Source: Lytechinus pictus
Lineage: Eukaryota
Length of the DNA: 64,000 nucleotides
Direction of reading: 5' to 3'
Assembly: GCF_037042905.1 (NCBI RefSeq)
Contig: NC_087255.1
Span: forward strand, 26,288,001-26,352,000
The translations under genes were made by a program, and so were the position numbers. The first letter of the stretch is position 1. Each line of letters opens with the position of its first letter. Below, one piece after another: positions 26,601 to 26,971 of the stretch. The notes under the pieces were generated by a model. It did not search any database. It was not told where the DNA came from and was given only the letters and a program-made list of their open reading frames with translations.

Positions 26601-26971
26601 AAATTATGGTAAGTTTTCAAATGAAACGAGAAATTTTCGGTTTAGAAGATGCATTCTATCATAATCCCGATAGTTAGTTATTTTTTAATTTCTGATTTGC
26701 GAGATTTTTTTTATGTATCCCTCTTGTTTTCATCCGTAGCAGGAGACGAAAGAAGGAACCTTTCCAAACAAGAAGTCTTAAAGGTGTACGTACCACTCCA
26801 TCAGGCAGTGTGCCCAACGATGACCAATATGAGGTCCCCCGGGCCCGAGGGGACGGCGAGGATCACCTGTATGAAGGGCTTCGGAGAAAAAGCAGTAAAT
26901 ACAGCGAGGCAGAGGGTTACATAAGCATGGACGGTCCAGACAGAGTCGAGTATGTTAATACGATCATGTGA
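20686..26971 (+). CDS. Receptor A: type-I membrane protein, signal peptide + C-type lectin + Ig-like + FN3 + TM + tyrosine-motif tail (~479 aa, 8 exons)
   Basis: Exons: 20686-20731 (MFYGITIFVLNFIQI), 21325-21476 (YDQAQSYCQELGGNLARIDS), 21951-22066 (CFFIGANDIEDEDEFKWQDG), 24408-24559 (WSPGQPDD..DCACLW..GQWDDTNC..MNFICQ), 24957-25259 (Ig-like, C-x58-C), 25661-25990 (FN3: LTVTW..GEGP..Y..LTELEPGTEYNISVSA), 26500-26608 (TM ILPWIFFGVSLAGNVLLLVVII), 26740-26971 (tail). All introns are GT-AG with compatible phases; total 1440 nt. Confidence 0.88.
22140..23296. repeat. Tandem repeat, 9 copies of a 128-129 bp unit, in intron 3 of receptor A
   Basis: Unit starts (GACTCAACC) at 22140, 22267, 22395, 22523, 22651, 22780, 22909, 23038, 23166; copies are near-identical. 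Confidence 0.97.

Follow-up and report, generated by a model that had tools for sequence, protein, structure and literature searches.

A C-type lectin receptor gene of Lytechinus pictus with a candidate phosphotyrosine docking tail, and its tandem paralog

The window, a 64,000-nt stretch of Lytechinus pictus DNA (RefSeq assembly GCF_037042905.1, contig NC_087255.1, positions 26,288,001 to 26,352,000, forward strand), has a G+C content of about 36-40% and contains two tandem receptor genes, designated here receptor A and receptor B. Receptor A is LOC129271085, the last coding exon of which (exon 8 in Table 1) encodes a 76-aa cytoplasmic tail. The spliced model of eight exons built from the window was identical at every residue to RefSeq XP_054764416.2 (isoform X1, 479 aa), with AG/GT at all exon borders. 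An intron AG at 26738-26739 lies directly 5' of the tail exon, a Cys codon is split across the last intron (TG at 26607-26608 and C at 26740), and the stop codon is at 26969-26971. In an earlier note on this DNA, the exon had been read as a receptor cytoplasmic tail with five motifs, YEVP, YEGL, YSEA, YISM and YVNT; exon, translation and motif strings were all as given there. Another candidate for exon 1, at 21176-21239, begins with ATG, is hydrophobic, has the right phase and yields an open 485-aa model; it was dropped because RefSeq uses 20686-20731. When 1.84 billion representative proteins were searched with the 76-aa tail, one real match was obtained, a 478-aa protein, and its cluster comprised the RefSeq models of L. 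pictus LOC129271085 and L. variegatus LOC121424259. A literature search found none of six locus identifiers of the family named in any paper. LOC129271085 is an annotated, uncharacterized gene, and the function proposed below is a candidate one, read from its sequence.

Exons 4 to 8 were covered, with the introns skipped, by spliced contigs of two L. pictus RNA runs and by stranded raw reads of a third. After one-base shifts, the junctions 24559>24957, 25259>25661, 25990>26500 and 26608>26740 were confirmed by RNA, the last of these by contigs of three runs plus eight stranded raw reads with seven different starts, and the loose 5' letters of the reads and contigs starting at 24407 corresponded to the end of exon 3. 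All raw RNA reads at gene A were in one orientation. Since spliced RNA and these one-orientation reads support junction 26608>26740, and RefSeq is identical here, the tail exon is read in the frame that had been proposed for it and not in the alternative one. The ortholog is present in a contig of a second species, which, once its listed differences were applied, matched the L. variegatus protein at 368 of 374 residues.

Two in-frame acceptors 3 nt apart are available at the tail exon (Table 1). Acceptor 26740 places Cys-Arg at the membrane border and acceptor 26743 places Trp there instead, the Cys being a possible palmitoylation site. Four raw reads running past 26608 fitted acceptor 26743 for their first 15 bases, and the consensus of the loose-end reads at 26609, which are short read tails with low agreement, matched nothing in the window beyond 15 bases. 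The same choice between C-R and W at the membrane border was seen in the ortholog models of S. purpuratus, and the use of alternative acceptors may be conserved between the two species. In RefSeq isoform X3 (401 aa), splicing to the membrane exon uses a second AG, 4 nt 5' of the regular acceptor (26494-26500), by which the frame is shifted and the protein ends before the membrane segment; X3 is possibly a soluble form or a decay target, and its junction had no support among the RNA reads mapped to gene A. Intron 3 of receptor A contains a 128-bp tandem repeat in nine copies with 98% identity (window 22136-23296), the source of repeated ORFs of 53 aa.

Table 1. Coordinates in the window of the receptor A features and of the receptor B tail exon
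Feature	Position (nt)	Strand	Remarks
Exon 1: start codon and signal-peptide-like hydrophobic N-terminus	20686..20731	+	Exact match to XP_054764416.2; followed by GT donor
Exon 2: C-type lectin domain, first part	21325..21476	+	Pfam Lectin_C; AG/GT borders; conserved with paralog B
Exon 3: C-type lectin domain, middle part	21951..22066	+	AG/GT borders
Exon 4: C-type lectin domain, last part, with QPD and WDD	24408..24559	+	Pfam Lectin_C; RNA junction 24559>24957
Exon 5: strand-rich domain of ~100 aa, no Pfam match	24957..25259	+	RNA junctions on both sides
Exon 6: fibronectin type III domain	25661..25990	+	Pfam fn3, 42.5-45.8 bits; RNA junctions 25259>25661, 25990>26500
Exon 7: short stalk and single membrane-spanning segment	26500..26608	+	RNA junctions; uncharged hydrophobic run
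Exon 8, coding part: 76-aa cytoplasmic tail and stop codon	26740..26971	+	RNA junction, RefSeq match, tail HMM
Alternative in-frame acceptor (NAGNAG, cagCAGg, 26738-26745), 3 nt downstream	26743	+	Resulting model equals XP_054764417.2 (isoform X2)
3' UTR, at least to 27380	26972..27380	+	Continuous RNA contigs and raw reads
YEVP (Tyr433, tail Y30)	26828..26839	+	Y and E invariant, P nearly invariant across the family
YEGL (Tyr447, tail Y44)	26870..26881	+	Y and L invariant, G nearly invariant; A-clade acidic residues at -3/-4
YSEA (Tyr457, tail Y54)	26900..26911	+	Lytechinus only; Ile in S. purpuratus orthologs
YISM (Tyr463, tail Y60)	26918..26929	+	Tyr invariant; +3 M in Lytechinus A, I everywhere else
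YVNT (Tyr474, tail Y71)	26951..26962	+	Tyr invariant; +2 Asn in 9 of 10 tails; +3 Thr throughout the A clade
Tail exon of tandem paralog B (LOC129271086)	52539..52809	+	Comparator; tail aligns with that of A

Receptor A begins with a signal peptide and a C-type lectin domain, which are followed by an unnamed domain of about 100 aa, a fibronectin type III (FN3) domain, one membrane helix and the 76-aa tail. A type I topology is predicted, because a hydrophobic leader is present at the N-terminus, the membrane segment lies near the C-terminus and the tail follows it. With the whole protein as query, Pfam matched Lectin_C (PF00059) at residues 40-153 (71.6 bits, cut-off 22.6) and fn3 (PF00041) at residues 267-358 (42.5 bits, cut-off 25), and no Pfam family matched residues 150-262 between the two. 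At the sugar-site positions of the lectin domain, QPD was present and WND read WDD, the residues W138, D139 and D140 of the latter being invariant across the family; the domain is predicted from QPD to be Gal-type-like.

Residues ~380-403 are uncharged and hydrophobic, and AlphaFold placed a helix at 380-406. The AlphaFold model, made from a 10-sequence alignment and with a mean pLDDT of 39.5, was used for the membrane helix only, as it was too poor to confirm disorder or domain folds; in it, the unnamed domain had strands only, at low confidence, and the tail, which is probably disordered, was unstructured. No charged residue was found in the membrane segment of A or B. Four positions of the segment, W382, S388, G391 and L395, were invariant in both of the clades described below, the rest of it being variable, and they may form a helix-packing face for self-association or for association of A with B.

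Gene B extends over window 43.8-52.8 kb and, in an exon-by-exon comparison, had the same exon plan as gene A. When the 812-Mb L. pictus genome was scanned with an HMM of ten tails from the family, only loci A and B matched; related loci number at least seven in S. purpuratus. A maximum-likelihood tree separated the proteins into two clades with 100/100 support, the A clade consisting of L. pictus A, L. variegatus A and S. purpuratus LOC100890603 and LOC105437983, and the B clade consisting of L. pictus B, L. variegatus B and the other S. purpuratus copies. As each clade contains both genera, the duplication that gave rise to A and B is placed by the tree before the Lytechinus/Strongylocentrotus split, which occurred roughly 40-50 million years ago. 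A and B had been proposed to be paralogs, and the homologous tails and the two-clade tree agree with this, both lineages having been kept since before the two genera separated.

The A orthologs of S. purpuratus, LOC100890603 and LOC105437983, share with receptor A the same architecture, 61-63% identity and identical YEGL and YVNT sites; YEVP is kept in the former and reads YEVS in the latter. They differ from it in having no Tyr at the position of YSEA and in the third site, SSYLSI, which is a YxxI that also fits the ITIM pattern. Receptor B of L. pictus and its L. variegatus ortholog (LOC121424038) likewise share the exon plan, the domains and four anchor tyrosines with A, but they possess a fifth site, YQxL, and a strict ITAM, YADI-x6-YINI, where A has YISM-x7-YVNT. 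The additional YQxL results from a 13-aa tandem duplication in the receptor B tail (52670-52750; EYQGL... repeated as EYQCL...), which was observed in B of L. pictus and L. variegatus and in none of the S. purpuratus copies.

A profile search with 10 members of the family recovered it only in Strongylocentrotus and Lytechinus, with weak matches to lectin and FN3 domains in fish beyond them. No other ectodomain carrying the tail module was found in the tail search, which returned the tail's own cluster and two low-complexity chance matches, and the tail matched only itself when a search with the full protein was scored on residues 404-479; both searches are insensitive to short disordered sequence.

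Ten full-length tails from three species (L. pictus, L. variegatus and S. purpuratus), a narrow sample, were aligned. Seven columns were invariant, L13, Y30, E31, Y44, L47, Y60 and Y71, and P33, H42, G46 and N73 were nearly so. Four of the seven are tyrosines (hypergeometric P = 1.3e-4, a significance inflated by the generally slow change of Tyr), and these conserved columns stand in a tail whose identity to that of receptor A is 50% in the S. purpuratus orthologs and 25% in B. From the alignment, an ancestral cassette can be written as YE[VIL]P, Y[EQ]GL, 12 residues, Yxx[I/M], 6-7 residues and Y[VI]N. Sites two and three were exactly 12 residues apart in 8 of 10 tails, and both exceptions were Lytechinus B tails, in which the 13-aa internal duplication lies at this place. 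The third site was YISM in L. pictus A, YITM in L. variegatus A and YLSI in all three S. purpuratus A-clade tails, and the last tyrosine belonged to a YxN in nine tails of both clades, the YINI of B among them.

The order YExP...YxGL...YxN had been described in the earlier note as common to A and B, and the tail alignment bore this out. The same alignment contradicts the description of the A tail as having a different motif set, since four of its five tyrosines are positional homologs of those of B. Judged from the ten tails, the four tyrosines form an old cassette derived from the common ancestor of A and B, and what A and B have in common is, on the same grounds, the YxN site together with this four-tyrosine cassette, not an ITAM. 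By the same comparison, YSEA and the p85-type (YxxM) reading of the third site are recent Lytechinus features; the first of the ITAM-like pairs (YEGL-x6-YSEA), which had been listed as a feature of the receptor, is thereby reduced to a Lytechinus-specific one.

The composition and the rate of change of the tail were compared with those of the remaining protein. Tyrosine makes up 6.6% of the tail versus 3.0% of the rest, a difference that is weak taken alone, and all four motif classes occurred together in 0.08% of shuffled tails, a figure to be read with the post hoc choice of the motif set in mind. An acidic residue was present within positions -4 to -1 at four of the five tyrosines of tail A; the claim that most of them have acidic residues upstream is correct for these four and not for YSEA (Y54), which has none. 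Between L. pictus and the L. variegatus-like contig, 3 amino-acid changes versus at least 5 silent ones were counted in the tail, and 13 versus 11 in exons 5-6, both being crude counts among the variants listed. On these numbers, the tail appears to be under stronger constraint than the ectodomain between the two Lytechinus species, and there are hints that the ectodomain (exons 5-6) is evolving faster.

The tail was compared with the known classes of tyrosine motifs. The spacings in tail A are YEGL-x6-YSEA and YISM-x7-YVNT, as had been noted together with the degeneracy of the second half-sites, and this description was accurate: a strict ITAM (YxxL/I-x6-8-YxxL/I) was absent from tail A, the second half-site failing in both pairs. 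Among the 10 tails, a strict ITAM was present only in L. pictus B, L. variegatus B and one S. purpuratus tail of the B clade, and further B-clade tails ended in YVNS or YVYM. The Pfam ITAM model (PF02189) gave 13.5 bits with tail A (cut-off 22.2), matching its first 8 model positions only, at YEGL, and none of the tails reached the cut-off. No ITIM or ITSM was found in the L. pictus A tail. Of the docking codes, the Grb2-type pYxN is represented by YVN at residues 474-476, and the p85-type pYxxM by the +3 Met of L. pictus YISM and L. variegatus YITM, a residue not found there in the S. purpuratus A clade. A pair of the form YxxL-x12-Yxx[I/M], present family-wide, is retained in A. Because this pair persists, with a spacing like that in FcgammaRIIA, receptor A cannot be called independent of Syk.

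DHLYEGL had been called hemITAM-like. A hemITAM has been defined as YxxL with acidic residues at -2, -3 and -4 (PMC3576117). Upstream of YEGL are Glu at -4, Asp at -3 and His at -2, with a further acidic residue at -6, and in one S. purpuratus ortholog the -4 residue of the equivalent site is Asn; the label was therefore given up. Nor does the orientation agree, hemITAM receptors being type II with an N-terminal tail and receptor A being type I with a C-terminal one. The likeness to CLEC-2, Dectin-1 and CLEC9A lies in a lectin receptor having its own YxxL with acidic residues upstream, and not a borrowed adaptor chain; in those type II receptors the tail is N-terminal and has one YxxL, preceded by acidic residues at -2/-3/-4 (PMC3576117), whereas receptor A is type I, with a C-terminal tail, four conserved tyrosines, acidic residues at -3/-4 and His at -2. 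Two C-type lectins in the oyster membrane, CgCLec-TM1 and CgCLec-HTM, are likewise invertebrate receptors whose tails carry a tyrosine motif, and they are reported to act via Syk and ERK (reviewed in PMC13027682); they belong to another phylum and have a single hemITAM, and the likeness drawn here is one of description.

Among vertebrate receptors, FcgammaRIIA carries YxxL-x12-YxxL, CEACAM3 carries YxxL-x7-YxxM, and DAP10 and CD28 carry YxNM sites. The 12-residue spacing of FcgammaRIIA equals that of the family-wide Y[EQ]GL-x12-Yxx[I/M] pair, a resemblance without sequence homology. DAP10 and CD28 use the YxN (Grb2) and YxxM (p85) codes, which in receptor A lie on separate tyrosines, again without sequence homology. 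Functionally, the closest analogues of the family are the self-signalling lectin receptors, namely the vertebrate hemITAM receptors and the oyster pair, from which it differs in topology, in the combination of lectin and FN3 domains and in its four conserved tyrosines.

From these features, the tail of receptor A is probably a phosphotyrosine docking tail in a lectin receptor. This reading is favored because conservation extends from the tyrosines to the residues that set SH2 specificity, most notably the Asn at +2 of the last site, and because the acidic context preceding three of the four conserved sites, the constraint on the tail and the presence of SH2 proteins in the genome fit it. The Grb2 SH2 domain requires Asn at +2, and we know of no sorting or trafficking signal that needs this residue. 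Gene structure, expression, frame, homology of the tails and conservation of the tyrosines were observed, whereas phosphorylation, binding partners, ligand and cell type are inferred. In the proposed scheme, binding of a ligand would cluster the receptor ectodomain, Src-type kinases would phosphorylate the tail tyrosines, and SH2 proteins would dock at the phosphorylated sites. The most specific prediction is a Grb2/Drk-type adaptor at the C-terminal YVN; an SH2 domain of the Crk, Nck or Abl type would fit YEVP, and the YEGL...YISM pair could accommodate either one tandem-SH2 protein or single SH2 proteins.

Components of such a pathway were present in the L. pictus genome, including an SH2 exon with a p85 inter-SH2 domain beside it, several Src-like loci combining SH2 and kinase, and at least 43 matches to SH2 exons. 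Invertebrates are reported to have a single Syk-like gene plus SHARK (PMC10253181), and transcripts of Grb2, Syk, HTK16 and Csk have been reported from a sea star egg (PMC11593052). Syk was not identified in the L. pictus genome: the sole locus with two nearby SH2 and kinase exons, C17 at 2.14 Mb, was rejected, as it holds two Src-like copies of one SH2 half-exon and not a tandem SH2. These two similar half-SH2 copies, 258 bp apart and upstream of the kinase exons (G000:C17:2144200-2144680), may be mutually exclusive exons.

Of the other explanations, that of motifs arising by chance in a tyrosine-rich linker is very improbable. Three- and four-letter motifs are indeed common by chance, the ITAM score of 13.5 bits stays under the 22.2 cut-off, and one of the five tyrosines, YSEA, is not conserved; however, no variation was seen at four tyrosines and three flanking specificity positions in tails whose identity falls to 25-50%, and the spacing is conserved as well. 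That the conserved tyrosines serve mainly as YxxPhi trafficking signals for clathrin adaptors, receptor A then being an endocytic or scavenging receptor, is the main rival to docking and unlikely, though less so. In all the tails, YEGL and YISM/YLSI/YADI are compatible with YxxPhi, endocytosis is a function of many C-type lectin receptors, and the nearest matches outside echinoids are fish proteins named mannose-receptor-like. Those fish similarities are, however, confined to the lectin and FN3 domains and to 23-36% of the query, and YE[VIL]P and Y[VI]N are not YxxPhi, yet the +1 Glu, +3 Pro and +2 Asn in them are conserved; the A-clade acidic residues upstream of Y44 would, moreover, suit a kinase substrate. 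An endocytic role of YEGL and YISM could exist alongside docking.

The earlier note had favored a division of output, B signalling through an ITAM and Syk, and A through p85 and Grb2 as a co-receptor beside B of the CD28, DAP10 or LAT type, which we also consider unlikely, and about as much so as the trafficking explanation. The strict ITAM of L. pictus and L. variegatus B, found in no A-clade tail, agrees with its first half, as do several differences fixed since before the genus split: Thr at +3 of the last Tyr in A, which precludes an ITAM half-site; Glu at +1 of Y44 with acidic residues upstream in A versus Gln in B; and a hydrophobic residue at +1 of Y60 in A versus an acidic one in B. 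The genes are, in addition, in tandem and the only two with such a tail in the genome, which also has a p85-like gene. The assignment of A to PI3K and Grb2 nevertheless does not follow, since YxN occurs in both clades, so that A and B cannot be told apart by Grb2-type docking, and YxxM is limited to Lytechinus A, S. purpuratus having YLSI; even the ITAM is unstable inside the B clade, with its YVNS and YVYM variants. As to the paired co-receptor and the DAP10/LAT-like comparison, these were not upheld: the ectodomains of A and B are only 46-55% identical, the L. pictus A tail has no ITIM, the membrane segments have no charged residue for adaptor pairing, and the four conserved tyrosines are common to both tails. 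The fixed differences, located at positions of SH2 specificity (+1 to +3 of Y44 and Y60, and +3 of Y71), would leave room for at most modest divergence in output.

For the phosphotyrosine docking reading, a broader setting can be envisaged, although as a speculation that is somewhat less likely still than divided output or trafficking: a camarodont family of self-signalling type I CTLD-FN3 receptors, its four-tyrosine cassette uniting a long-spaced ITAM-like pair with a Grb2 site, in which, of the two ancient lineages, A would be modulatory and B activating, the two perhaps joined through the W...S..G...L face of the membrane helix. If this were true, the A clade, with its non-ITAM ending and the ITIM-like SxYxxI in S. 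purpuratus, would stand beside a B clade with an ITAM ending, and ITAM-style lectin signalling would have been invented independently outside vertebrates. The innate immune gene repertoire of sea urchins is very large. According to a 2026 review, lectin signalling in echinoderms has not been studied (PMC13027682). The two-gene family of L. pictus, a species used for genetics, offers four well-defined conserved tyrosines amenable to mutation, through which one could learn whether lectin signalling of the ITAM-like and Grb2 types is present in a deuterostome other than a vertebrate.

Some further features were observed in and near the window. About 27 kb past its end, a tyrosine kinase domain is encoded in full by a single large exon on the minus strand (G000:C11:26378599-26379738). 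Of the solved structures, ROR1/ROR2 come closest to it, and the locus has the look of an ordinary gene for a ROR-family receptor, without any evident connection to the lectin receptors. In the stretch separating genes A and B, runs of N at 40786-41133 and 41179-41490 represent masked sequence or gaps. A similar short block with two frames, located upstream of gene A (16112-16270) and in an intron of gene B (45799-45960), is probably a dispersed repeat. At 61708-64000 on the plus strand, a long open frame running off the window end contains a zinc knuckle and stretches resembling gag, protease and integrase, and has the appearance of a retrotransposon gag-pol.
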